Both the position numbers and the translations under genes were made by a program. Of a stretch of DNA of 13,324 bases, positions 1 to 13,324 are shown in pieces (the first letter of the stretch is position 1; every line of letters begins with the position of its first letter). The DNA comes from Octopus sinensis (taxonomy: Eukaryota): contig NW_021826529.1 of NCBI RefSeq assembly GCF_006345805.1, positions 1 to 13,324 on the forward strand. Direction: 5' to 3'. Below the pieces are notes generated by a model, which was not told where the DNA came from, did not search any database, and saw only the letters and a list, made by a program, of their open reading frames with translations.

Positions 1-160
1 CTTAGTCCCGTAAATTAGCGGTTCGGCCAAAAGACCGATTGAATAAGTACTAAGCTTAAAAAGAAAGTCCTGGGGGTCGATTTGATTCGACTAAAGACGG
101 TGCTCCAGCATGGTCGCAGTCAAATGACTGAATCAAGTAAAAGAATAAAAAGAGAAAGAA
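1..160 (+). mobile_element. 3' part of SINE family A (cut by window edge, diverged)
   Basis: Aligns by eye to 3007-3160 (TAGCGGTTCGGC...AATAAGTACT...GGGGTCGA...GGTGCTCCAGCATGG...CAAATGACTGAA) and ends in an AAAAG-rich tail. Confidence 0.85.
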
Positions 161-172
161 AAGAAAGAAAGA

Positions 173-173
<1 letters not shown>

Positions 174-215
<42 letters not shown>

Positions 216-300
216 GATATGCACATATACATGAACTGACCAGAGAAAACACTCACACACACACACGTACTCACATATACACACGCATACACACACAAAT
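174..300. repeat. (CA)n / (TA)n compound microsatellite
   Basis: Pure (AC)n at about 175-208, degenerate CA repeats to about 300. Confidence 0.9.
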
Positions 301-870
301 TCGCTCATATAAATGCCTTTACATGCTTACATGTGTATGCAAAGATACACAAACCCACGCTCAGACATACTCGCTCGCATTCATATACACACATAGAATC
401 TTTTATTCAGAATTTTCATATTTTCTCGCCATGATAATCACAAGAGACATTAAATATTGTTGAAAATAATCGGATAATCATTAGAGAAACTCGAAATGTT
501 ATAAACCTAAATAAAATCCATTCCTGGATTAAGATTATAAACGTCGTTAACATTTAATGGCGTCTCTCGTTAACATCGTCTGTTTAACCCCAGGTCGCTC
601 ATGACATGTTCTCACCCAGCTATAGAAACTTTGAAACTAACTTTATGCCCTCCTCTTCTATTATGATACGAAGTTCACATTTTCTTTTGTCCTTTCTGAT
701 AAATGTATCTGTCAAAACTAACCAGAAGTTTTTCAAGTACAAAGCTCTTGAGATAAAAATTGCGAAAGTGTGGCAACACAATACTAGAAGAAAAGCCGTG
801 ATTGTAGGTGTCCTAACAGTAATAGCAAAATGGGAGATTATAACCTATATCAAAATTGGTGGCTGCTCAT

Positions 871-960
871 ATCCTCGGCGGAACTTGAACTCAGAAAGTA
901 AAGACGGACGATATACCTCTAAGAATTTTGTCTGGCGTGCTAATTTCCAGCTCAGTGTCT
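871..960 (-). mobile_element. Degenerate 5' fragment of SINE family B
   Basis: CCTCGGCGGAACTTGAACTCAGAA...GGCGTGCTAA...CCAGCTCA matches the head of the copies at 1012-1221 and 8403-8634. Confidence 0.7.
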
Positions 961-1011
961 GGAAAAGGAAAAAAAAAAAAAAAGAAGAGAAATTATAAGA
1001 ATAATTGTCTT

Positions 1012-1221
1012 TCCTATCATAGACACAATGCCTGAAACTATGTGGGAAGGAGAAATTCGTTTACATCGATTCCAGCGTTTCACTGGTATTTAATTTTCGA
1101 CACCGAAATAACGAAAGGCTATGCCGACCTCGGCGGAATTTCAACCCAGAACGCGAAGACAGACGAAATACCGCAAAGAATTTTGCCCGGCGTGCTAACG
1201 ATTCTGCCAGCTCACCGCCTT
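1012..1221 (-). mobile_element. tRNA-derived SINE family B (Meta-like central domain), tail variant 1
   Basis: Minus strand starts AAGGCGGTGAGCTGGCAG with a B-box-like GGTTGAAATTCC. Central part is homologous to 8403-8634, but the 3' tail differs. Confidence 0.8.
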
Positions 1222-1225
1222 AATC

Positions 1226-1430
<205 letters not shown>

Positions 1431-1431
<1 letters not shown>

Positions 1432-1984
1432 TGCCCTGATGCAGTACCAGGCAGTGGCTCTCATGGCTTTGATCTTAACTGATTGGAAGTGTTATCATGT
1501 ACATTGTTTTGTCTGGGTATAAAAGATGGGCTACAGCAAATATTCTGCTCAATACCACAGATTTGCTTGTCAGTTGTTTGACCTTAACCAGTTGAGCATG
1601 TCCCTTAGTGGCTGACGATATGTGCATCTCTGATCACGAGCAGGAGTAGTGGGGGAGCATCATAGCCATGTGTTGAGAGGGATTCTTTGGGGTTTGAATA
1701 ATTCACCTCTGGAAACATGGGTGGGTTCTTTCAACATCCTTAAACAACCTTATTCAGGGACCTTTTGAGCGGGATGGGCTACTCAACCTGAAGAAAATTC
1801 TAACTGGGCACCACCTGCAAGGTCTGTGCTGTTTATCTTGATATGAGATCACCATGTCGCGCACATATGGTTGTGATGCATGTGCCTGGTGTACCCTTAT
1901 CAGACGGGCAGTCATGATGGGTATATTGGGCTTCGTATATTTTACCCCAGTGTCCCTTTGATGGCATGAACTGCTCTCTCACTC
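1431..1984. mobile_element. ~555-bp interspersed repeat, copy 1, embedded in (AAT)n
   Basis: Co-linear with 2091-2649 end to end (CCCTGATGCAGTAC...CTGCTCTCTCACTC), with many substitutions and small indels. No TIR, ORF or clear Pol III boxes seen. Confidence 0.75.
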
Positions 1985-2003
1985 AATAATAATAATAATA
2001 ATG

Positions 2004-2054
<51 letters not shown>

Positions 2055-2090
2055 TAATGATGATAATAATAATAATAATAATAATGATAA
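1985..2090. repeat. (AAT)n microsatellite
   Basis: Seen directly. Confidence 0.97.
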
Positions 2091-2649
2091 TTTCCCTGAT
2101 GCAGTACGAGACAGTGGCTCTCATGGTTTCTTATCTTAACTGATTGGAAGTGCTATCATGTACATTGTTTGGTCATGGTTTAAAAGATGAGCTACGGCAA
2201 ATATTCTGCTCAATACCACAGATTAGCTTGTCAGTTATTTGACCTGAACCAGTTGAGCATGTCCCTTGGTGGCTGACGATATGTGTATCTCTGATCACGA
2301 GCAGGAGTCGTGGTGAAGAGCATTATAGCCATGTGTTGAGAGGAATTCTTTGGGGGTTTGAATAATTCAGCTGTGGAAACCTGTGTTTCGTCCACCTTCA
2401 TTAAACAACCCTTATTCAGGGACCTTTTGAGTAGGATGGGTTTACTCAACCTGATGAAAATTCTAACTGGGCCCCATCTGCAAGGTCATGCGCTGATTAT
2501 CTTGACGTGAGATCACCATGTCGTGCACATATGGTTGTGATGCATGTGCCTGGCATACCCTTATCAGACGGGTAGTTATGGTGGATATACTGGGCTTCGT
2601 ATATTTGTACTCCAATGTCGCTTTGATGGCATGCACTGCTCTCTCACTC
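2091..2649. mobile_element. ~555-bp interspersed repeat, copy 2, embedded in (AAT)n
   Basis: Diverged paralogue of 1431-1984 in the same orientation, with the same boundaries against AAT repeats. Confidence 0.75.
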
Positions 2650-2684
<35 letters not shown>

Positions 2685-2742
2685 TAATAATAGTAATAAT
2701 AGTAATAGTAATAATAATGATAATAATAATAATAATAGTAGT
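2650..2742. repeat. (AAT)n/(AGT)n microsatellite
   Basis: Seen directly. Confidence 0.95.
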
Positions 2743-3162
2743 AGGCGCAGGAGTGGCTGTGTGGTAAGTAGCTTGCTAACCAACCACATGGTTCCGGGTT
2801 CAATCCCACTGCGTGGCATCTTGGGCAAGTGTCTTCTGCTATAGCCCCGGGCCGACCAATGCCTTGTGAGTGGATTTGGTAGACGGAAACTCAAAGAAGC
2901 TTGTCGTATATATGTATGTATATATATATATATGTATGTGTGTGTGTTTGTGTGTCTGTGTTTGTTCCCCTAGCATTGCTTGACAACCGATGCTGGTGTG
3001 TTTACGTCCCCGTCAACTAGCGGTTCGGCAAAAAGAGACCGATAAAATAAGTACTGGGCTTACAAAAAGAATAAGTCCCGGGGTCGAGTTGCTCGACTAA
3101 AAGGCGGTGCTCCAGCATGGCCACAGTCAAATGACTGAAACAAATAAAGGAGTAAAGGAGTA
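2743..3162 (+). mobile_element. Full-length tRNA-derived SINE family A (CORE-SINE-like)
   Basis: A box TGGCTGTGTGG (2754-2764) and B box GGTTCAATCCC (2797-2807). GTGGCATCTTGGGCAAGTGTCTT (2813-2835) resembles the CORE domain motif GTGACCTTGGGCAAGTCACTT. Internal (TA)n(TG)n linker and a short repeated tail (AAAGGAGT)2. Several more copies in the window. Confidence 0.9.
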
Positions 3163-3665
3163 TGATTACCATCCCGTGCGTCATACCAATCGTATATATA
3201 CTGTTAGAAAGTATGATCGGTAGAGCTTTCTGAAATAAGATATCTTTACAGACGAAATAATCTTTATTGCTGCACGCGAGGGACAAACTCGTTTCGCCTT
3301 TCTTGAGGCTCGCAATGTTTTGCACCCGGTTATCATTCGTTTGAATAAAATTTGTGCCAGACCGAGTTTTTTTAAAAGTTCTCTAAGCTTCCGCAATATC
3401 AGAAGAGAGCGTAATATGTAGTTTCTTATACATCGAGGCATGTTCTTCTTGCTCCGATGTACATTTTTCTTATAACACAATATACGTCCATGAAGAGACT
3501 TTATATCAGAAAATTTCACAGCACCAAAGCCTTCTAACGGACTAAATTACAATTTAATTTAATTTTGTTTTTCCCGTTGCGTACACCGAGATTTTCTACA
3601 GTTCGGCCTAACTCCTGCAATATCAGTGAGTCTATTATTCACTGTTTCTTATATATATATACATA

Positions 3666-4073
3666 TCTCTTTTTTCTCTTTTTCTCTTTTACTTGTTTCA
3701 GTCATTTGACTGCGGCCATGCTGGAGCACCGCCTTTAGTCGAGCAATTCGACCCTAGGACTTATTCTTTGTAAGCCCAGTACTTATTCTATCGGTCTCTT
3801 TTGCCGAACCGCTAAGTAACGGGGACGTAAACACACCAGCCCCCCCATCGATGTTGGGGGGGGACAAACACAGACACACAAACACATACACACATATATA
3901 TATATACATATATACGACAGGCTTCTTTCAGTTTCCGTCTACCAAATCCACTCACAAGGCATTGGTCGGGCCGGGGCTATAGTAGAAGACACTTGCCCAA
4001 GATGCCACGCAGTAGGATTGAACCCAGAACCATGTGGCTGGTTAGCAAGCTACTTACCACACAGCCACTCCTG
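3666..4073 (-). mobile_element. SINE family A, near full length, inserted in a (TA)n tract
   Basis: Reverse complement is co-linear with 2743-3162; (TA)n on both sides. Confidence 0.9.
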
Positions 4074-4169
4074 ATATATATATGTTATTCGAATTGGTTA
4101 TGGGCATGAAACGATCGTAGTGTCTTTTTTCTCTTTATCTTATTAAACTTTTAATACCTTTTGATAGTT

Positions 4170-4410
4170 TATAAATAAATAAATAAATAAATAAATATAA
4201 AAATTTTTTAAAAATATATAAAAAATAAAAAAATATAAAATAAAAAATAAATAATATAAATAAAAAAATAAATAAATAATTAAATAAAATAATAATAAAT
4301 ATATATATATATATTTATAATTTATAAGTTTAAATTATTAATTTAAATAATTTTTAAAAATTTTAACTTTAATTTAAATATTTTAATTTGATTTTTGATT
4401 TTGATTTTGA
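4170..4410. repeat. AT-only low-complexity tract ((TAAA)n, A/T runs)
   Basis: Almost no G or C over about 240 bp. Confidence 0.9.
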
Positions 4411-4420
4411 TTTTTCCAGT

Positions 4421-4481
4421 TTCAGCTTATGAGCTGTGGCCATGCTGGTGCACCGCCATTTGCTGGGGCACCGCCATTTGT
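4421..4481 (-). mobile_element. 3'-terminal fragment of SINE family A with an internal GCACCGCCATTTG duplication
   Basis: GTTTCAG...GGCCATGCTGG(T)GCACCGCC matches 3696-3734; the 13-mer occurs twice. Confidence 0.6.
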
Positions 4482-4843
4482 GTTTTTATATTTTATATTT
4501 TATATTTTTTATATATTTTTTTAATTAATTTATTTCTATGTATTGGCTTAAGATTTTCACTGTTTGATTTGCCTAATAGTGGTTTTATCTCTAATTTAAT
4601 ATAATATAATATATATATATATATTGGCGCACGAATTTCATTTTAGCAGTTGAGAATAGGGTACATGGCATTGAAACTTTACGGAAAGTGAGATGTGTCA
4701 GTCGTTTTCGTGTGTCATTGTAGAAACGACCTCAGTCTCCAATATATATTGTGTATTCAATACAAATGAATAAAGAGAGATTATCTCAGACAATGCAACA
4801 GCATCATGCCTTCTAACCGCGAGTATACGTTTAGTATTATATT

Positions 4844-5235
4844 TAGTGGAGGCGCAATGGCCCAGTGGTTAGGGCAGCGGACTCGCGGTCATAGGATCGC
4901 GGTTTCGATTCCCAGATCGGGCGTTGTGAATGTTTATTGAGCGAAAAAACACCTAAAGCTCCACGAGGCTCCGGAAGAGGATGGTGGTGATCTTTTCTGT
5001 ACTCTTTCACCACAACTTTCTCTCACTCTTACTTCCTGCTTCTGTTGTACCTGTATTTCAAAGGGCCGGCCTTGTCACTCTCTGTGTCACGCTGAATATC
5101 CCCGAGAACTATGTTAAGGGTACACGTGTCTGTGGAGTGCTCAGCCACTTACACGTTAATTTCACGAGCAGGCTGTTCCGTTGATTCGGATCAACCGGAA
5201 CCCTCGTCATCGTAACCGACGGAGTGCTTCCGTCC
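4844..5235 (+). mobile_element. Full-length tRNA-derived SINE family C with 11-bp TSD
   Basis: A box TGGCCCAGTGG (4858-4868), B-box-like GTTTCGATTCC (about 4902-4912). Direct repeats AGTATTATATT at 4833-4843 and 5236-5246. Head and central part shared with 8894-9449. Confidence 0.9.
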
Positions 5236-5364
5236 AGTATTATATTCAGGTGATGATTTTAATTTAATACTGTTCCAGTTGCATACAGCAAACAATAATA
5301 ATTGCTTTTATTTGTCATAACGGCATCTGATGAATAGCTTGTCATACGTTTATGACAAGAGTTT

Positions 5365-6088
5365 TTGTCTAAGAAATCGACACCAGGACTTTTTCTTTGT
5401 AAGCCTAGTACTTCCATCGGTCACTTTGGCCAAAGCGCTAGGTTACGGGGTCATACTGGTTGTCAGGCGATGGCGTGGCGGGGGGGGGGGGGCAGAGAAA
5501 CAAAAACATATCTCTTTTACTCTTTTACTCTTTTATTTGTTTCAGTCATTTGACTGCGGTCATGCTGGAGCACCGCCTTTAGTCGAGCAACTCGACCCCG
5601 GGACTTATTCTTTGTAAGCCCAGTACTTATTCTATCGGTCTCTTTTGCCGAACCGCTAGGTGACGGGGACATAAACACACCAGCATCGGTTGTCAAGCAA
5701 TGCTAGAGGGACAAACACAGACACACAAACATACACGCACACACATATATATATATATACATATATACGACGGGCTTCTTTCAGTTTCCGTCTACCAAAT
5801 CCACTCACAAGGCTTTGGTCGACCCGAGGCTATAGTAGAAGACACTTGCCCAAGGTGCCACGCAGTGGGACTGAACCCGGAACCATGTGGTTGGTAAGCA
5901 AGCTACTTACCACACGGCCACACCTGCGCCTATATATATATATAACGAGCATCTTCCACTTTCCATCTACCAAATCCACTTTGGTCGGCCCGAGGCTACA
6001 GTTGAAGACTCCTGCCCAAGGTGCCACATATTGGGACTGAACTCGGAGCCATGTGGTTGGGAAACAAGCTTCTTACAACACAGCCACA
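5365..6088 (-). mobile_element. Older, diverged SINE family A copy split in two (about 5365-5508 and 5932-6088) by a younger copy
   Basis: 5365-5505 matches the 3' module; 5945-6088 matches the head and CORE module. The two halves are in register around the insert. Confidence 0.7.
5510..5931 (-). mobile_element. Full-length SINE family A (younger, nested)
   Basis: Co-linear with 2743-3162. Ends ...CACCTGCGCCT (5' end on minus strand) and has a (TCTTTTAC)n tail. Confidence 0.9.
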
Positions 6089-6270
6089 CACACACACACA
6101 CACGTATGTATGTAGGTATTATCTATTTATCTATCTATCTAACTATCTGTTGTCTATCTAGCTATCTACCAACCTACTTTCTTCCTACCTATCTAACAGC
6201 CTGTCCATATACACGCACGCACACACACACACACACACACACACTCGTGCGCACATGCACACATGCACAT
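6085..6270. repeat. (CA)n, (TATG)n, (TATC)n and (CCTA)-like compound microsatellite
   Basis: Seen directly. Confidence 0.8.
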
Positions 6271-6740
6271 CCCTACCATACACCATCGTCACCATTACAA
6301 ACTATTAAAAACGAAACCTAACAAACAACCGAATTCTTCTCATTAAAATTGTGACAGCGTAAAATTTTACGATTCTTCTTTTAGAAGACTTAGTGTTTGT
6401 CCTTAATTATTCCACATTGCATGCATTTATTCCTTCTACATAGAAGATTCTTCACCAAATACCACAGTAATATGATTGAAAGATATTTCTTCGTCCAAAC
6501 GACGTTACAAACCCGTTTTACTAACATTTGCAAAGTTTTTATATTCTTAAAGTTGCTATTAGCTTATTTTATTTTTAGTTATCTCCCTTGATTATTATTT
6601 CTTCTTTTAGATTTTAAATACGATTAAAGACATTTTCATTCCTTATTTTTTTACAATCTATATGATATCTGTTCATCAAAAGATTCTCTATTCCTATATT
6701 TTTGTGAGAATCTATAAATTTTATCGTATCTATATACTAA

Positions 6741-7215
6741 ACTACTTACCTACCTACCTACCTACCTACCTACCTACCTACCTACCTACCTACCTACCTA
6801 CCTACCTACCTACCTACCTACCTATCTACCTATCTACCTACCTACCTACCTACCCACCTACTTACCTACCTATCTACCTACTTGCCTGCCTGCCTGTCTG
6901 CCTGCCAACCTATCAACCAACCTACCTACCTACCTACCTACCTCCCCACCTACCTACCTACCTACCTACCTACCTACCTACCTACCTACCTACCTACCTA
7001 ACTACCTACCTACCCACCTACCTACTTACCTACCTACCTACCTACTTGCCTGCCTGCCTGTCTACCTGCCAACCTATCAACCAGCCTACCTACCTACCTA
7101 TCTACCTACCTACCTACCTACCTAACTCCCTCCCTCCCTTCCCACCTAACTACCTACCTACATACATACATACATACATACATGCATACATACCTAAAAA
7201 TTTACCTATCTACCT
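6741..7215. repeat. Long (CCTA)n tetranucleotide tract with (CCTG)n and (TACA)n segments
   Basis: Seen directly; it produces the LPTY-repeat ORF at 6662-7237. Confidence 0.97.
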
Positions 7216-7284
7216 ACCTAACTTCAAATCTACATAACAGTCTATTTTTCATTATCCATCAATCTATCAATTAGCATGCACATC

Positions 7285-7495
<211 letters not shown>

Positions 7496-7527
7496 CTGTC
7501 TGTCAATCAATGTCTATGTGTCATGTA

Positions 7528-7907
7528 CACTACCGTCAGAAATTAATTAGCACCCTTGATTTGCTCTTCACTCAAGGTATGTGCTGTCACCTAGTGGCCA
7601 TATCTCGAACTATTGCTTTGTTGCGAGTTCACTGTTGCGCAGAACGATGGCGTAACTTTGTTTGCAGAGCAGTTTGAGAGTCTACAGCCTTATGATGTTG
7701 ACATAGCAGTGCAACAACAACTTGGAGTGCGGATGCAGACAAATCTTCCTTTGTTTAATAGATATATGTAGCGCCTCGCAAGGACCGAAATCACACCATA
7801 CTAAGTTTTCTCATCGCGTAAGACGTTTCGAACAGCTCATAGGTTTATTGATTTAACCTATTTAATGTAGAAATTTGAGAAGTGCTAATTAATTTCTGAC
7901 GCAAGTG
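7528..7907. mobile_element. Non-autonomous Tc1/mariner-type DNA transposon (MITE), 380 bp
   Basis: 26-bp TIRs CACTACCGTCAGAAATTAATTAGCAC (7528-7553) and GTGCTAATTAATTTCTGACGCAAGTG (7882-7907), 2 mismatches. TA on both sides (7526-7527, 7908-7909). No transposase ORF. Confidence 0.85.
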
Positions 7908-7985
7908 TACATACATACATACATACATACATACATACATACATACATACATACAAACACACATGCATACATGCATACATATATA
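7908..7985. repeat. (TACA)n microsatellite
   Basis: Seen directly. Confidence 0.95.
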
Positions 7986-8402
7986 TGAAGTTGAGGTTGA
8001 TTAAAATTTGTTTGTGATATATTACAACTTCTAAAAGGCAAATTCATTGCAATTACCGTGGATAAAAGATTCTCTCTTATGGGGAAAAGGTCTAAAAAAC
8101 ACCATATCTGAACAGTGCTGCCCCCTGTCGGATTTCCAGATGTATTTCTAGTTCTTTAGCCGTTATTAATGAGAAATACTGAAGGGATGTGACTCTGGAC
8201 AGACTTAAAGCCGAAGTTTTAAGTAAAACACATCTTTGATCATGAGGCTAGCATTGATACGTACAGACATACCCAAATAGGAGAAAGCTGATTTGATGAC
8301 GAAAGATCCAAACCATCACTGGAACTGCAAAAATCTGTAAAACATTCCAGAAGTTTACCATATAGGTGAATATGTGCAAGTCTAGACATACGACTATATG
8401 CA

Positions 8403-8634
8403 TATTTCTTTACTACCCACAAGGGGCTAAACACAGAGGAGACAAACAAGGACAGACATAGGTATTAAGTCGATTACATCGATCCCAGTGCGTAACTGGT
8501 ACTTAAATTATCGACCCCGAAAGGATGAAAGGCAAAGTCGACCCCGGCAGAATTTGAACTCACAACATAACGGCAGACGAAATACCGCTAAGCATTTCGC
8601 CCGGCGTGCTAACGTTTCTGCCAGCTCACCGCCT
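8403..8634 (-). mobile_element. Full-length SINE family B (Meta-like central domain), tail variant 2, with TSD
   Basis: Minus strand: AAGGCGGTGAGCTGGCAG...GAGTTCAAATTC (B box)...GTCGACTTTGCCTTTCATCCTTTCGGGGTCGAT, recalling the Meta/Sauria-type central motif. TATATGCA direct repeat at 8395-8402 and 8635-8642. Confidence 0.88.
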
Positions 8635-8893
8635 TATATGCATGACTATATATGCATGACTTACGACTATATGCATGAGAATACTTACATAAAAGAAAAC
8701 ATACAAATCTGCGCTTCTTCGAATACTGCACACATACACGCATACATGCAAAAATTCTCATTGAAGGAGCCTTGGATCTAGGTTAGAAATCGACTCTTTA
8801 TTGGCGAGAAATCTTGAAATTAAACTGAATAATCACACACACACATACGCATACACACACATACACACATACACACAAATGTATATACATTTA

Positions 8894-9449
8894 TATTACC
8901 GTGATCACCGTGACTGACCAGGCTATCAGATGTTGCTACACATCGCTGGTCACAACGCGCTTGGCATTGTTTTAGCCTTCAAATGACGCCACCCCGCTGG
9001 CTAAGCGAGCAGGCCAACAGAAGAAAGAGAGAAAGTTGTGGCGAAAGAGTAACAGCAGGGATCGCCACCACCCCCTATCGAAACCTCGTGGAGCTTTAGG
9101 TGTTTTCGCTCAATAAACACTCACAACGCCCGATCAGGGAATCAAAACCGCGATCCTACAACCTATTTCTTTATTACCCACAAGGGGCTAAACATAGAAG
9201 GGACAAACATGGACAGACATAGGTATTAAGTCGATTATATCGACCCCAGTGCGTAACTAGTACTTAATTTATCGACCCCGAAAGGATGAAAGGCAAAGTC
9301 GACCTCGGCGGAATTTGAACTCACAACGTAACGGCAGCCGAAATACCGCTAAGCATTTCGCCCGACGTGCTAACGATTCTGCCAGCTCGCCGCCGCGACC
9401 CTACAACCGCGAGTCCGCTGTCCTAACCACTGGGCCATTGTGCCTCCAC
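8894..9449 (-). mobile_element. SINE family C variant (same head and centre as 4844-5235, different tail), interrupted by a family B copy
   Basis: The reverse complement of 9395-9449 plus 9030-9163 matches 4846-5030; 8894-9025 is a different tail. Confidence 0.85.
9164..9393 (-). mobile_element. SINE family B nested in family C, with 16-bp TSD
   Basis: Near-identical to 8403-8634. Flanked by CCGCGATCCTACAACC (9148-9163) and CCGCGACCCTACAACC (9392-9407), 1 mismatch. Confidence 0.9.
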
Positions 9450-9824
9450 ACATTTATATACTATACGATAGAACCTCGCAATACGAGCGCACGCATTGTA
9501 CGAATAATTTGCTGCACAAGCCGAGACTTGTGCGAATCTTTGTCTTGAAGTACGAGCGAATATCTGCAGTACGAACACACAAATCGTCCCATCTTTAAGG
9601 TAATTCAGTTAATAAAACCATTTTACATATCTTTTTTGCATTCTCTTTTTTATAATTGTCATTTTACTTGTAACTGCACCTTTTCTGCTTTAAAACCCAT
9701 GAAAAATAATTTTTATTGGTTTTTGGTGAGCTGGAACGGATTAATTATATTTTAGTTAATTTCAATGGGGACACTTTGTCCTTTTTATATTTTCTCTCTC
9801 TGCTGATTTCTGTGTTCCTTTCTG

Positions 9825-9849
9825 TTGAAGAGCGTAGGCTCGAAACGTA
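9825..9849 (+). ncRNA. Degenerate minimal hammerhead-like motif
   Basis: TTGAAGAG-CGTAGGCT-CGAAACGTA: core with C3 replaced by U, loopless self-complementary ACGU stem III, weak stems I and II. Confidence 0.3.
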
Positions 9850-10242
9850 AAATACTTGCTGATTTCCCGAGCATTCGTTGTTTACACAGCCGTCTTCCTC
9901 TTTTGTTTTTTTTTTGTGTAAATTCCAACTATATATATATATTTATATATGTGTATGTATAATGAAGGGTGAAATTAATTAATTTGGAATAATTATCAAT
10001 TACACCAAGTAGTCTTCGGCATGTAAAAGCCTCATTCGAGGGAAATTTAAGTAATACTAAGCAATAAGGGTTTAGCAACGAATTGCCTTACCACATACCG
10101 AATTTAGAAATAGCAGTCAAAGGGTTATAGCTATTTCTTCTACTAACAAGGGAGATCTCAGTAAAAACAGCAATTGGAAGGCTGACACAAACAGGTAAGA
10201 GAGAATGAATTAACTGCAATCTATCAAACATTTTTAAAGTTA

Positions 10243-10349
10243 TCCACGGACGTACGTTTCGAAATCAAGTTTTCAGGAAAGCATAAGAATCAAATATTAA
10301 ATATTAAATAATTCTATCTTACCGAAACTTCTTTTCTCTTCAGCGTAGA
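10243..10349 (-). ncRNA. Type I hammerhead ribozyme, copy 1
   Basis: Minus strand: UCUACG-CUGAAGA-G[stem II]C-GAAAC-GUAC-GUC^CGUGGA. Predicted cleavage after the C complementary to G10249. Confidence 0.8.
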
Positions 10350-10840
10350 ATACTATAATCATAAATGATTATATATTGAATTTTGAGATACTAGGAGGCA
10401 CCAACTCAACTCAGTATCAGAGCGAGCTAGAATCCGCAACTAGTATCACCGAATTCAAATTTGTGAATGAAACGATTGTGTCAACAGCCCCTTCCCACCC
10501 GCGTGTAGCCAAAACAAGATGCTGTGGTCATCTACTGAGATAAAATATGGTTATCCGTAATAATGAAGGGTGAAATTAATTAATTTGGAATAATTATCAA
10601 TTACACCAAGTAGTCTTCGGCATGTAAAAGCCTCATTCGAGGAAATTTAAGTAATACTAAGCAATAAGGTTTAGCAACGAATTGCCTTACCACATACCGA
10701 ATTTAGAAATAGCAGTCAAAGGGTTATAGCTATTTCTTCTACTAAAAAGGGAGATCTCAGTAAAAACAGCAATTGGAAGCTGACACAAACAGGTAAGAGA
10801 GAATGAATTAACTGCAATCTATCAAACATTTTTAAAGTTA

Positions 10841-10946
10841 TCCACGGACGTACGTTTCGAAATCAAGTTTTCAGGAAGCATAAGAATCAAATATTAAATA
10901 TTAAATAATTCTATCTTACCGAAACTTCTTTTCTCTTCAGCGTAGA
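10841..10946 (-). ncRNA. Type I hammerhead ribozyme, copy 2
   Basis: Same motif; one base missing in the distal stem II region. Confidence 0.8.
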
Positions 10947-11436
10947 ATACTATAATCATAATGATTATATATTGAATTTTGAGATACTAGGAGGCACCAA
11001 CTCAACTCAGTATCAGAGCGAGCTAGAATCCGCAACTAGTATCACGAATTCAAATTTGTGAATGAAACGATTGTGTCAACAGCCCCTTCCCACCCGCGTG
11101 TAGCCAAAACAAGATGCTGTGGTCATCTACTGAGATAAAATATGGTTATCCGTAATAATGAAGGGTGAAATTAATAATTTGGAATAATTATCAATTACAC
11201 CAAGTAGTCTTCGGCATGTAAAAGCCTCATTCGAGGGAAATTTAAGTAATACTAAGCAATAAGGGTTTAGCAACGAATTGCCTTACCACATACCGAATTT
11301 AGAAATAGCAGTCAAAGGGTTATAGCTATTTCTTCTACTAAAAAGGGAGATCTCAGTAAAAACAGCAATTGGAAGGTGACACAAACAGGTAAGAGAGAAT
11401 GAATTAACTGCAATCTATCAAACATTTTTAAAGTTA

Positions 11437-11542
11437 TCCACGGACGTACGTTTCGAAATCAAGTTTTCAGGAAGCATAAGAATCAAATATTAAATATTAA
11501 ATAATTCTATCTTACCGAAACTTCTTTTCTCTTCAGCGTAGA
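11437..11542 (-). ncRNA. Type I hammerhead ribozyme, copy 3
   Basis: Same motif; core intact. Confidence 0.8.
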
Positions 11543-12034
11543 ATACTATAATCATAAATGATTATATATTGATTTTGAGATACTAGGAGGCACCAACTCA
11601 ACTCAGTATCAGAGCGAGCTAGAATCCGCAACTAGTATCACGAATTCAAATTTGTGAATGAAACGATTGTGTCAACAGCCCCTTCCCACCCGCGTGTAGC
11701 CAAAACAAGATGCTGTGGTCATCTACTGAGATAAAATATGGTTATCCGTAATAATGAAGGGTGAAATTAATTAATTTGGAATAATTATCAATTACACCAA
11801 GTAGTCTTCGGCATGTAAAAGCCTCATTCGAGGGAAATTTAAGTAATACTAAGCAATAAGGGTTTAGCAACGAATTGCCTTACCACATACCGAATTTAGA
11901 AATAGCAGTCAAAGGGTTATAGCTATTTCTTCTACTAAAAAGGGAGATCTCAGTAAAAACAGCAATTGGAAGGCTGACACAAACAGGTAAGAGAGAATGA
12001 ATTAACTGCAATCTATCAAACATTTTTAAAGTTA

Positions 12035-12141
12035 TCCACGGACGTACGTTTCGAAATCAAGTTTTCAGGAAAGCATAAGAATCAAATATTAAATATTAAA
12101 TAATTCTATCTTACCGAAACTTCTTTTCTCTTCAGCGTAGA
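12035..12141 (-). ncRNA. Type I hammerhead ribozyme, copy 4
   Basis: Same motif; its 5' end lies 19 nt from the inversion junction. Confidence 0.8.
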
Positions 12142-12302
12142 ATACTATAATCATAAATGAGGGGCTGTTGACACAATCGTTTCATTCACAAATTTGAATT
12201 CGGTGATACTAGTTGCGGATTCTAGCTTGCTCTGATACTGAGTTGAGTTGGTGCCTCCTAGTATCTCAAAATTCAATATATAATCATTTATGATTATAGT
12301 AT

Positions 12303-12409
12303 TCTACGCTGAAGAGAAAAGAAGTTTCGGTAAGATAGAATTATTTAATATTTAATATTTGATTCTTATGCTTTCCTGAAAACTTGATTTCGAAACGTAC
12401 GTCCGTGGA
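12303..12409 (+). ncRNA. Type I hammerhead ribozyme, copy 5
   Basis: Stem I TCTACG (12303-12308) / CGTGGA (12404-12409). CTGAAGA 12309-12315. Stem II 12316-12391. GAAAC 12392-12396, GTAC loop, GTC 12401-12403. Cleavage predicted after C12403. Confidence 0.82.
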
Positions 12410-12904
12410 TAACTTTAAAAATGTTTGATAGATTGCAGTTAATTCATTCTCTCTTACCTGTTTGTGTCAGCCTTCCAATTGCTGTTTTTACTGAGATCTC
12501 CCTTTTTAGAAGTAGAAGAAATAGCTATAACCTTTGACTGCTATTTCTAAATTCGGTATGTGGTAAGGCAATTCGTTGCTAAACCCTTATTGCTTAGTAT
12601 TACTTAAATTTCCCTCGAATGAGGCTTTTACATGCCGAAGACTACTTGGTGTAATTGATAATTATTCCAAATTAATTAATTTCACCCTTCATTATTACGG
12701 ATAACCATATTTTATCTCAGTAGATGACCACAGCATCTTGTTTTGGCTACACGCGGGTGGGAAGGGGCTGTTGACACAATCGTTTCATTCACAAATTGAA
12801 TTCGGTGATACTAGTTGCGGATTCTAGCTCGCTCTGATACTGAGTTGAGTTGGTGCCTCCTAGTATCTCAAAATTCAATATATAATCATTTATGATTATA
12901 GTAT

Positions 12905-13010
12905 TCTACGCTGAAGAGAAAAGAAGTTTCGGTAAGATAGAATTATTTAATATTTAATATTGATTCTTATGCTTTCCTGAAAACTTGATTTCGAAACGTA
13001 CGTCCGTGGA
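12905..13010 (+). ncRNA. Type I hammerhead ribozyme, copy 6
   Basis: CTGAAGA 12911-12917 ... CGAAACGTACGTC^CGTGGA; cleavage predicted after C13004. Confidence 0.82.
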
Positions 13011-13214
13011 TAACTTTAAAAATGTTTGATAGATTGCAGTTAATTCATTCTCTCTTACCTGTTTGTGTCAGCTTCCAATTGCTGTTTTTACTGAGATCTC
13101 CTTTTTAGTAGAAGAAATAGCTATAACCCTTGACTGCTATTTCTAAATTCGGTATGTGGTAAGGCAATTCGTTGCTAAACCCTTATTGCTTAGTATGTGT
13201 ATGTATATATATAT

Positions 13215-13324
13215 CACTTTGATCACTTTACCCGACCAGTCCGTCAGCGTCCATTTGACACCGCTGGTCACAGCACGCTGTCCACTCCTCTCTGGATCGC
13301 ACCTTTCTCATCCACGTGATCCCA
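13215..13324 (-). mobile_element. Probable 3' end of a LINE or SINE, tail related to 8894-8970 (cut by window edge)
   Basis: TGATCAC...GACCAG...TCAG...CGCTGGTCACA.C.CGCT is shared with 8898-8968; it abuts the (TA)n flanking the array. Confidence 0.5.

Follow-up and report, generated by a model that had tools for sequence, protein, structure and literature searches.

A probable non-LTR retrozyme with an extended type I hammerhead ribozyme in the genome of Octopus sinensis

Introduction

Near-identical repeats that each carry a hammerhead ribozyme (HHR) motif may be an inert satellite or the copies of an element mobilized through RNA, and one such locus in Octopus sinensis raises the question of which of the two applies. 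It lies within the 13,324-nt stretch of DNA analysed here (contig NW_021826529.1, positions 1 to 13,324; “the window”). In animals, tandem repeats with type I HHRs are known as non-LTR retrozymes, which have a low GC content, target site duplications (TSDs) of more than 4 bp and circular RNAs that are self-paired (Cervera and de la Pena, 2020; PMC7229834). A phylogenetic tie connects them to the pseudo-LTRs (pLTRs) of Penelope-like elements (PLEs) (Li, Clavereau and Pollet, 2026; preprint 10.64898/2026.07.22.740005), and Penelope elements have been reported in octopus genomes (PMC8967140).

We conclude, with a probability of roughly 80%, that the locus is a single recent insertion, in an octopod genome, of a non-autonomous hammerhead retroelement: a metazoan non-LTR retrozyme derived from a PLE pLTR. 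It is a retrozyme of an already known kind in a cephalopod and opens no new category; in the literature searched we found no earlier report of a cephalopod host for hammerhead retrozymes. A retrozyme or Penelope-type element had been proposed in the preliminary description of this DNA, and that reading is supported by the tandem AT-rich non-coding units, the TSD, the inverted arm and the strand-specific RNA structure.

Organization of the repeats

Unit alignment resolves positions 9959–13196 (3.2 kb) into approximately 5.4 copies of a 601-nt consensus unit, which are ~99.9% identical to one another, compared with 80–94% identity for the remaining dispersed repeats of the window. The copies differ almost solely by 1-nt homopolymer indels, neighbouring hammerheads are spaced by 596–601 nt from cleavage site to cleavage site, and a comparison with the rest of the window revealed no further unit-like sequence. 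The locus had been described as an array of ~600-bp units; the repeats are there, at 601 nt, but they do not form one array. Instead, two arms stand head-to-head with the hammerhead-sense 3′ ends outward, and meet at 12160/12161. The left arm (9959–12160, minus strand; 2202 nt, 3.66 units) was delimited from the unit alignment, the positions of the cleavage-site residue C17, the repeat families D1–D5 and the inverted pairs I1–I25; its 5′ end at 12160 falls at about unit position 482 and its 3′ end at 9959 at unit position 290 (...CAUUAU). The right arm (12161–13196, plus strand; 1036 nt, 1.72 units), delimited from the listing of repeats and inverted pairs and from the unit alignment, starts at about unit position 359 and ends at 13196, unit position 195 (...UUAGUAU). 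At the inversion junction (12160–12161) the 5′ ends of both arms have a 1-nt overlap; the arms are offset in unit register by 123 nt, and 123 nt also separate the two members of inverted pair I3 (11927–12160 and 12284–12517).

The unit is non-coding, as first described, with a longest stop-free stretch of 64 codons, and a tRNA scan found no tRNA. GC content is ~0.32–0.36 (10001–13000), within the low-GC range of retrozymes (<45–50%), and the units are short tandem repeats that each contain a type I hammerhead and have no LTR, primer-binding site (PBS) or polypurine tract (PPT). The monomer had been called large: at 601 nt it does exceed the 150–450 bp given for metazoan retrozymes (Cervera and de la Pena, 2020; PMC7229834), but it is not exceptional, falling within the consensus lengths of 51–972 bp reported since (Li, Clavereau and Pollet, 2026).

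Structure of the ribozyme

Each unit has one complete type I motif, on one strand only. The six motifs previously noted were all found: on the plus strand at 12303–12409 and 12905–13010 (predicted cleavage after C12403 and C13004), and on the minus strand of the left arm at 12035–12141, 11437–11542, 10841–10946 and 10243–10349 (predicted cleavage after C12041, C11443, C10847 and C10249, respectively). The assignment at 12303–12409 draws on an end-to-end alignment to the Rfam family RF00163, the minimum free energy (MFE) fold and a descriptor match, and the core and helices at 12035–12141 are the same. Because the copies are near-identical, with almost only homopolymer indels between them, the six hammerheads amount to one independent observation, not six.

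In the plus-strand copy, helix I pairs 12303–12308 with 12404–12409 (UCUACG/CGUGGA, 6 bp) and is followed by a 2×2 internal loop and a 3-bp AGU/ACU extension (12298–12300 with 12412–12414), as had been noted. The core elements CUGAAGA (12309–12315) and GAAA (12392–12395) enclose helix II and its extension (12316–12391), in which a 4-bp base closed by the G-C 10.1–11.1 pair leads through a 2×2 loop into a long imperfect hairpin, the extension comprising 72–76 nt. Helix III and its loop (12395–12402) consist of 2 bp (A-U and C-G) and a palindromic GUAC loop. The string CUGAAGA...GAAA...ACGUACGU-C, with GUC at the cleavage site, is the same in 6/6 copies, and the residues C3-U4-G5-A6-N7-G8-A9, G12-A13-A14, A15.1-U16.1 and a cleavable H17 are all present in the correct order. 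Helix I is open-ended and helices II and III are closed, the arrangement of a type I hammerhead; helices I and II are recovered in an unconstrained MFE fold. The core and three helices are invariant among the copies, and within the hammerhead only 1-nt deletions occur, in the distal helix II extension.

The locus had been placed among elements that carry minimal type I hammerheads, which does not agree with the layout of its ribozyme. The so-called min-HHRs of PLEs have a helix II of 7–8 bp and a helix I of 4–5 bp, whereas here the internal loops interrupt helix I at exactly 6 bp and helix II at exactly 4 bp, which are the canonical loop sites (Cervera and de la Pena, 2014; PMC4209133). The layout resembles that of the “canonical” metazoan type I ribozyme with a long helix II extension added. 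Given this extension of 72–76 nt, the usual contacts between loop 1 and loop 2 would fall to the internal loops, which makes self-cleavage activity uncertain.

Detection of the ribozyme by descriptors and covariance models

A descriptor search, as had been proposed, matched the motif in the unit. A strict descriptor called for a helix I no shorter than 5 bp, a helix II of 4 bp or more closed by G-C, a helix III, and UH. In 20,000 dinucleotide-shuffled versions of the unit it had no match on either strand, so that the noted order of the core and pairing of the flanking helices were not reproduced by chance; a much looser descriptor matched 4/20,000 shuffles. Across the whole window a relaxed descriptor picked out one further place, 2273, where the helices consist entirely of wobble pairs and the closing pair is U-G; we judged this match to be chance. 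Scanning public collections for the pattern CTGANGAG-N60-90-CGAAACGTACGTC returned the same core strings at 31 places (18 metagenomic and 13 in prokaryotic genomes). These too are chance matches, mostly in GC-rich contigs: helix I reaches 5 bp in 0/31, and the single place with a 4-bp helix II has a helix I of 0 bp.

Covariance-model searches gave a different outcome depending on the sequence submitted. No Rfam family matched the whole window at gathering thresholds, and a scan of 9900–13324 at E ≤ 10 yielded no hammerhead but only spurious matches to bacterial sRNAs and cis-regulatory elements. When 141 nt were searched, Hammerhead_1 (RF00163) was the top family (17.9 bits, E = 0.052), with an alignment over model positions 1–45 of 45 and a 72-nt insert in helix II. 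The Rfam search suggested at the outset thus recovered the right family end to end, at a score below the gathering value of 34 bits, a shortfall that we attribute to the penalty for the helix II insert. A simple CTGANGA...GAAA...GTH pattern that allowed no more than 34 nt for helix II had no match, since helix II spans 76 nt.

The helix II insert is also an argument for reading the locus as an inert tandem repeat or small satellite, in which the hammerhead would be a dead relic disrupted by a 63-nt segment of helix II (12329–12391) and the repeats would have grown at the DNA level, by unequal exchange or replication slippage, with no RNA-mediated mobilization. The sub-threshold Rfam score probably stems from this insert, and with 12329–12391 removed a compact GAAA-AGAAG-UUUC helix II would stand directly before GAAAC, which suggests a secondary insertion; nor was a second locus found in the collections scanned. 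Against this, the internal loops, which follow exactly 6 bp of helix I and 4 bp of helix II, coincide in position with the canonical loops. The units also contain the insert in near-identical form within an intact TSD, and it therefore appears to be the version with the insert that was recently mobilized. Features of the RNA and of the insertion site, given below, also speak against a satellite, and we consider this reading unlikely.

Predicted folding of the RNA

The hammerhead-sense strand of the unit is predicted to fold far more stably than expected, with an MFE of −161.3 kcal/mol against −125.6 ± 5.9 kcal/mol for shuffled sequences (z = −6.07; 0/150 shuffles as low). The antisense unit has z = −1.65, so that strong structure is confined to the strand that carries the ribozyme, which argues against a DNA-level satellite with a relic hammerhead. 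In the circular MFE structure of the monomer 65% of bases are paired, a predicted fold in keeping with the self-paired monomer RNAs of retrozymes. Taken by itself, the hammerhead region of 127 nt does not exceed its shuffles in stability (z = −0.6).

In a monomer, the helix III hairpin has a predicted energy of 0 kcal/mol and is thus not expected to be stable, and a self-duplex of ACGUACGU is predicted at −9.8 kcal/mol. Cofolding two copies gave a double-hammerhead topology at −56.8 kcal/mol, compared with 2 × −22.2 kcal/mol for the monomers. A weak helix III with a palindromic loop has been described for metazoan type I HHRs (Cervera and de la Pena, 2014; PMC4209133).

Evidence for a single insertion

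The 14-bp sequence TATGTGTATGTATA occurs twice in the window, once at each border of the element (9948–9961 and 13194–13207). Each copy overlaps the element by 3 nt, the left one with its terminal ATA at the start of the element and the right one with its initial TAT at the element's end; a flank match of at least 14 arose in 1/20,000 flank shuffles. Discounting the 3-nt microhomologies leaves a TSD of 8 bp, still longer than the 4 bp that retrozyme TSDs exceed, and the exact length (8–14 bp) is ambiguous because the target is of low complexity. The reconstructed target, ...TATATATATATTTATATATGTGTATGTATA|TATATATCAC..., is a TA-rich, (TA)n-type microsatellite. PLEs insert preferentially at (TA)n, and their insertions consist of partial tandems next to which lies an inverted 5′-truncated copy (Craig et al., 2021; PMC8557442); all of this signature is seen here: partial tandems, an inverted 5′-truncated arm and an AT-rich/(TA)n target. 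One TSD brackets both arms, and inverted arms with their 3′ ends outward are not a product of DNA slippage; both observations argue further against the satellite reading. A SINE of ~110 bp in the flank matches a sequence of Argonauta hians, in support of a cephalopod origin of the DNA; this SINE is all that the 20-kb A. hians locus shares with the window, and no unit-like sequence is present there.

Inverted repeats in a long-read assembly may also arise as an artefact, in this case a fold-back chimera or a mis-collapsed repeat, and the true locus would then be a simple tandem array. Such a source would account for the differences between copies, nearly all of them 1-nt deletions in homopolymers, of the sort that long-read sequencing tends to introduce, and tandem and inverted structures of the PLE type are known to trouble assemblies (PMC8557442). 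However, the right flank is unique sequence that does not repeat the left flank in reverse complement, and the 14-bp duplication of the flanks restores a continuous empty site, as would not be expected of a fold-back chimera. An artefact of this kind is highly improbable.

Coding capacity and relatives

An ORF-level search found no reverse transcriptase (RT) or endonuclease ORF, nor any long complex ORF, in the 13.3-kb window; the single ORF between pLTRs that combines a telomerase-like RT with a GIY-YIG domain, by which an autonomous PLE is defined, is missing at this level of search, although degraded RT fragments could lie in the flanks. Exact-protein look-ups of the ORFs in the unit (55, 47 and 42 aa) returned no record, a word-indexed homology search with the 55-aa ORF gave no candidate, and none of 1.84 billion representative proteins proved to be a genuine homologue of the short, 47-codon ORF. 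An exhaustive HMMER search with a 58-codon sense stretch gave a single match (P0002, E = 9e-4). This match is spurious, being a read-through of a 336-bp tandem repeat present five times on an ENA metagenome contig that shows neither a hammerhead core nor an Rfam match. No viral contig matched in a scan with an 18-mer, and no related copy of the unit was found in the protein, metagenome, prokaryotic-genome or viral-contig collections scanned. The element is known here from one locus.

The repeats could also be a fragment of an autonomous PLE, that is, pLTR-only, extremely 5′-truncated partial tandems left by insertion of a full-length PLE transcript. PLE insertions are indeed heavily 5′-truncated, partially tandem and often accompanied by an inverted copy (PMC8557442), PLE hammerheads are located in the pLTRs (PMC4209133), and the 47-codon ORF of the unit, which begins 33 nt downstream of the cleavage site, recalls the proximity of ORF start and HHR in an anole PLE (PMC11167929). 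On the other hand, the 601-nt period is maintained over 3.66 + 1.72 units with no RT or endonuclease between the hammerheads, compared with a tandem period of 3–4 kb in PLEs, and the lack of any real homologue of the short ORF weighs in the same direction. We regard this origin as quite improbable, and even if a full-length PLE with matching termini were the source, the 601-nt tandem form would count as a retrozyme under the current definition.

A model for insertion

The geometry of the locus fits one event of twin-primed, target-primed reverse transcription on a multimeric or circular RNA, as has been described for PLEs. An endonuclease would nick the two target strands at ATA^TATA, 14 bp apart, and each 3′-OH, ending in ATA, would anneal to UAU in the sense RNA and prime reverse transcription; the two cDNAs would then be joined by their 5′ ends at 12160/12161. 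Since both cDNAs cross the ribozyme cleavage site repeatedly, the template would have been either a multimeric transcript that had escaped cleavage or a monomer religated into a circle, on which reverse transcription proceeded by rolling circle. Twin priming is familiar from LINE-1, in which staggered 3′-OH ends prime on the RNA and produce inverted segments with 3′ ends outward and one TSD; the segments are joined internally and together amount to at most one element length. The inverted geometry here is similar, whereas each arm exceeds one unit, and for that reason a multimeric or circular template would be required.

The preceding steps can be proposed from the life cycle of described retrozymes. 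Tandem copies would be transcribed, two hammerheads would pair through the self-complementary ACGUACGU into a double hammerhead that cleaves after GUC, the 601-nt monomers would be circularized by a host RNA ligase, and mobilization would rely on the RT/GIY-YIG endonuclease of an autonomous PLE elsewhere in the genome. We infer self-cleavage, a circular RNA and in-trans mobilization by a PLE reverse transcriptase. In vitro, a purified PLE protein cuts the two strands of an AT-rich target DNA and extends both, which would explain the arrangement of the arms, and HHR cleavage is dispensable to insertion (Frangieh et al., 2024; PMC11167929).

A more specific proposal, which we advance tentatively and hold to have somewhat less than an even chance of being right, is that the locus preserves a clean footprint of one twin-primed insertion, with a 601-nt hammerhead RNA, circular or multimeric, as the template on which both target strands primed reverse transcription. 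If so, it would lend in vivo support from a cephalopod to the both-strand priming known in vitro for a PLE, as well as support for the rolling-circle model of retrozyme mobilization. The locus would further represent a retrozyme family missing from catalogues, and imply that a helix II extension of ~72 nt hides hammerheads from Rfam-based censuses, such that animal hammerheads are undercounted. More modestly, the insertion is single, young and clearly delimited, and its TSD, its two inverted arms of more than one unit and its 3-nt microhomologies would provide useful comparative evidence on mobilization, the geometry being readable as twin-primed reverse transcription on a template longer than one unit; and a natural type I hammerhead whose long helix II extension escapes standard covariance-model screens bears on the completeness of genomic ribozyme censuses.

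Relationship to other hammerhead elements

The element shares with metazoan non-LTR retrozymes a short, low-GC, non-coding array of few units per locus with a type I hammerhead in each, a TSD of more than 4 bp, a sense RNA predicted to be highly self-paired and a proposed dependence on PLEs. It differs from them in its two inverted arms in place of a simple direct array, in its host clade, the cephalopods, for which the literature searched gave no report, and in the ~72-nt helix II extension that takes it below the Rfam threshold. The hammerheads of PLE pLTRs are likewise of type I, with a weak helix III suited to action as a dimer, and PLEs share the partial tandems with an inverted 5′-truncated copy, the AT-rich/(TA)n target and the use of both target strands as primers, here proposed. 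In contrast to PLEs, its repeats enclose no RT/GIY-YIG ORF and recur every 601 nt, versus 3–4 kb, and the two 3′ ends are 95 nt apart (unit positions 195 and 290), compared with a PLE “tail” of 30–40 bp.

Tandem hammerhead repeats are also found in satellite 2 of newts and salamanders and in Sm-alpha of Schistosoma, which are transcribed into self-cleaving monomers. Their helix III of 1–2 bp with a palindromic loop, similar to that seen here, makes a double hammerhead (dimer) necessary; in contrast, their helix II is compact, their loop 1–loop 2 contacts are conserved, and their units are ~330 nt long and present in thousands of copies. The LTR retrozymes of plants (Cervera et al., 2016; PMC4918200) are non-autonomous and similar in monomer size, with hammerhead-processed circular RNAs of 600–1000 nt, but are distinguished by type III hammerheads within LTRs, a PBS, a PPT, 4-bp TSDs, a GC content above 55% and Gypsy-type mobilization, none of which is seen in the octopus element.

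A hammerhead ribozyme motif in a tandem 601-nt repeat

Positions 9959-13196 of the window consist of repeats of one unit with a consensus of 601 nt. The hammerhead-sense string GAAACGUACGUC occurs six times in the window, placing C17, the predicted cleavage-site base, on the plus strand at 12403 and 13004 and on the minus strand at 12041, 11443, 10847 and 10249; UCUACG lies directly 5' of CUGAAGA in all copies. In the plus-strand copy at 12298-12414, AGU, a 2-nt loop and UCUACG lead into CUGAAGA; helix II is formed by GAAA, a 68-nt extension and UUUC, followed by the core GAAA; helix III reads C-GUAC-G-U-C, with cleavage predicted after the final C; and CGUGGA, a 2-nt loop and ACU make up the 3' part. 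The conserved core (C3-A9, G12-A14, A15.1-U16.1 and C17) is complete and in the correct order, with the G-C pair at 10.1-11.1 and the C1.1-G2.1 pair both present. The preliminary description of six copies with all core positions in order was accurate, and the cleavage site it predicted, after C12403, agrees with the sequence of this copy.

The unit copies differ at just 20 alignment columns, with about four substitutions and mostly 1-base homopolymer deletions, a pattern more suggestive of errors in long-read sequencing, or of slippage by a polymerase, than of divergence. Given this near-identity, the six motifs amount to one independent observation, and the likelihood of its arising by chance was addressed with two controls. 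A strict descriptor called for GAAA, helix III and UH, together with a minimum of 5 bp in helix I and of 4 bp in a helix II closed by G-C and no more than 100 nt in span. When the unit was shuffled 20,000 times with its dinucleotide content preserved, and both strands were searched, this descriptor never matched; a much looser descriptor matched four of the 20,000 shuffles. As an external control, the same core strings at equal spacing were sought in public metagenome and prokaryote collections and found at 31 places, none of which has a helix I as long as 5 bp; a 4-bp helix II is present at only one of them, where helix I is 0 bp. Helices I and II were recovered in the unconstrained minimum free energy (MFE) fold of 12290-12416, the energy of which is ordinary for its AU-rich composition (z = -0.6).

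An extended helix II and the Rfam models

When compared with Rfam at gathering thresholds, the whole window matched no family, and in a search over 3.4 kb at E<=10 the hammerhead was absent from the list. When 12285-12425 was searched alone, Hammerhead_1 (RF00163) was the top family (E = 0.052). Its alignment, at 12303-12409, covers the full model (positions 1-45 of 45), places all core bases and the two sides of helices I and III, and carries a 72-nt insert in place of the 10 nt expected for distal helix II. Rfam thus agrees with the proposed architecture, with a score of 17.9 bits that falls short of the curated gathering score of 34; ordinary screens would be expected to miss the motif, probably because of the long helix II.

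Within helix II, GAAA-AGAAG-UUUC (12316-12328) could make a compact helix II of 4 bp with a 5-nt loop, and UUUCG is present at both ends of the 63-nt segment that follows (12329-12391). Were this segment absent, GAAAC would directly abut the compact hairpin to give a textbook 44-nt hammerhead. From the sequence, helix II (12316-12391) may contain a secondary insertion.

Predicted RNA folding

The hammerhead-sense monomer has an MFE of -161.3 kcal/mol, against -125.6 +/- 5.9 kcal/mol for 150 dinucleotide shuffles (z = -6.07), the lowest of which reached -142.8 kcal/mol; the antisense monomer gave z = -1.65. Helices I and II are retained in the global monomer fold, and 65% of bases are paired in the circular fold. 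Helix III in isolation is predicted to remain unpaired (0 kcal/mol). The self-complementary segment ACGUACGU has a predicted duplex of -9.8 kcal/mol, and two hammerhead regions cofold at -56.8 kcal/mol, as against 2 x -22.2 kcal/mol for the monomers, in the classical double-hammerhead topology; helix III is accordingly predicted by these models to favour a dimer.

Two opposed arms at a duplicated target site

The repeats had been described as an array of ~600-bp units; the repeat is 601 nt long, but instead of a single array there are two opposed arms. The left arm (9959-12160; 2202 nt, 3.66 units) has its hammerhead sense on the minus strand, and the right arm (12161-13196; 1036 nt, 1.72 units) on the plus strand, such that their 5' ends join at 12160/12161 with a 1-nt overlap and their 3' ends form the outer borders. 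Each border adjoins a copy of the 14-mer TATGTGTATGTATA (9948-9961 on the left, 13194-13207 on the right), and the window contains no further copy of it; a border match of at least 14 nt, with 4 nt of slack allowed, was seen in one of 20,000 flank shuffles. Rebuilding the empty site gives a microsatellite rich in TA, ...CTATATATATATATTTATATATGTGTATGTATA|TATATATCACTTTG..., which can also be written ...TATGTGTATGTATA|TATATATCAC.... The duplication and the element share 3 nt at each border, ATA on the left and TAT on the right. Counted from the cleavage site, the 3' ends of the element fall at unit positions 290 (...CAUUAU|UAC) and 195 (...UAGUAU|UAC); with 19 UAU sites in the unit, neither position is necessarily specific.

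The geometry of arms and borders is most likely that of target-primed reverse transcription. After the duplication, the top strand at the left border and the bottom strand at the right border are each antisense to the hammerhead RNA, which argues that both staggered 3'-OH ends primed cDNA synthesis on sense RNA. In such twin priming, both nicks would lie at ATA^TATA, 14 bp apart, and the primers, both ending ATA-3', would be able to base-pair with a UAU of the RNA. This geometry resembles the activity of a purified Penelope-like element (PLE) protein, which in vitro cleaved and extended both target strands and preferred AT-rich DNA (PMC11167929), and the insertion is also like the genomic signature of PLEs, in which partial tandems lie beside an inverted copy truncated at its 5' end and (TA)n targets are favoured (PMC8557442). 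Penelope elements have been reported from octopus genomes (PMC8967140; PMC8557442).

The left arm runs across the intact GUC|C junction four times and the right arm twice, suggesting that the template was either a multimer left uncleaved or a circle, religated and then copied repeatedly. Taking characterised animal retrozymes as a model (PMC7229834, PMC7761336), we infer a matching RNA-level cycle, in which tandem copies would be transcribed, dimer-assisted self-cleavage would yield 601-nt monomers, a host ligase would circularise them, and a PLE would mobilise them. For an anole PLE in vitro, hammerhead cleavage required protein and was dispensable for insertion (PMC11167929).

Probable assignment to the metazoan retrozymes

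Descriptively, the element conforms to the metazoan non-LTR retrozymes, which are non-autonomous mobile elements with a hammerhead. Like these, it has tandem non-coding units with a type I hammerhead in each, low GC, a target-site duplication of >4 bp and RNA predicted to be self-paired, features which support the retrozyme interpretation of the preliminary description. No long complex ORF was found in the window and, consistent with the earlier view of the unit as lacking an ORF, none above 64 codons was found in it; on this ground the element is not an autonomous PLE. The 601-nt monomer is larger than the 150-450 bp of the animal retrozymes described in 2020 (PMC7229834), and lies inside the 51-972 bp range of a 2026 preprint (10.64898/2026.07.22.740005), in which ray-finned fish average 650 bp and retrozymes are tied phylogenetically to PLE pseudo-LTRs. 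Unlike the minimal PLE variant, the hammerhead layout is that of the "canonical" metazoan type I architecture (PMC4209133), with 6 bp of helix I and 4 bp of helix II before their loops and a 2-bp helix III with a palindromic tetraloop; it departs from this architecture in having an internal loop and a long hairpin instead of loop 2.

The observation is thus confirmed and its interpretation supported, for a kind of element already described. It is of modest interest for its cephalopod host, for a helix II extension that keeps the putative ribozyme hidden from Rfam thresholds, and as an unusually legible multi-unit insertion, twin-primed in our reading, with its target-site duplication intact. 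A literature search of incomplete coverage found no published description of cephalopod hammerhead retrozymes, and no relatives of the unit were found in the collections searched, including public metagenomes and prokaryotes.

Short ORF, host and surrounding sequence

On the hammerhead-sense strand, a 47-codon ATG ORF begins 33 nt 3' of the predicted cleavage site (12421-12537 on the plus strand; 11880-12023 and 10088-10231 on the minus strand), with homopolymer indels interrupting some copies. Protein searches found no credible homologue; a weak match at 4860-6521 of an ENA metagenome contig (ERZ25074195:ctg48703) was rejected as spurious, this being a 336-bp x5 tandem repeat, 98% identical and without a hammerhead core, called as a 519-aa ORF that requires TGA as a sense codon.

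The remainder of the window holds microsatellites and dispersed SINE-like repeats of 80-94% mutual identity, in families at 2742-2959, 3864-4073 and 5715-5932, and at 1089-1222, 8403-8636 and 9164-9397, in both orientations; with units ~99.9% identical, the insertion is young by comparison. One of the families has matches in Argonauta hians: a SINE-derived ORF has 80% identity to an A. hians hypothetical protein, and the matching A. hians locus has a ~110-bp SINE in common (85-89% identity), which marks the window as octopod and backs the cephalopod origin first proposed.

The segment UUGAAGAGCGUAGGCUCGAAACGUA (9826-9850), which precedes the left end of the array by about 110 nt, has CGAAACGUA and GCGUAG in common with the hammerhead, GCGUAG being the complement of the unit's CUACGC. 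No hammerhead descriptor matches this segment, and it is not significantly similar to the unit; the resemblance is probably due to chance, though it could be a decayed older motif. A tandem duplication at 1472-2740, with (TAA)n/(AAT)n tracts inside it, has a period of ~661 bp and 90-92% identity; a match to a very relaxed hammerhead descriptor within it, at 2273, has all-wobble helices and was judged to be chance. Long microsatellites are found at 6742-7220 ((CTAC)n, x120), 7282-7501 ((ATCT)n, x55), 1230-1430 ((TAA)n, x68) and 4171-4313 ((ATAA)n), the first two giving rise to a strong GC skew over 6500-7500.
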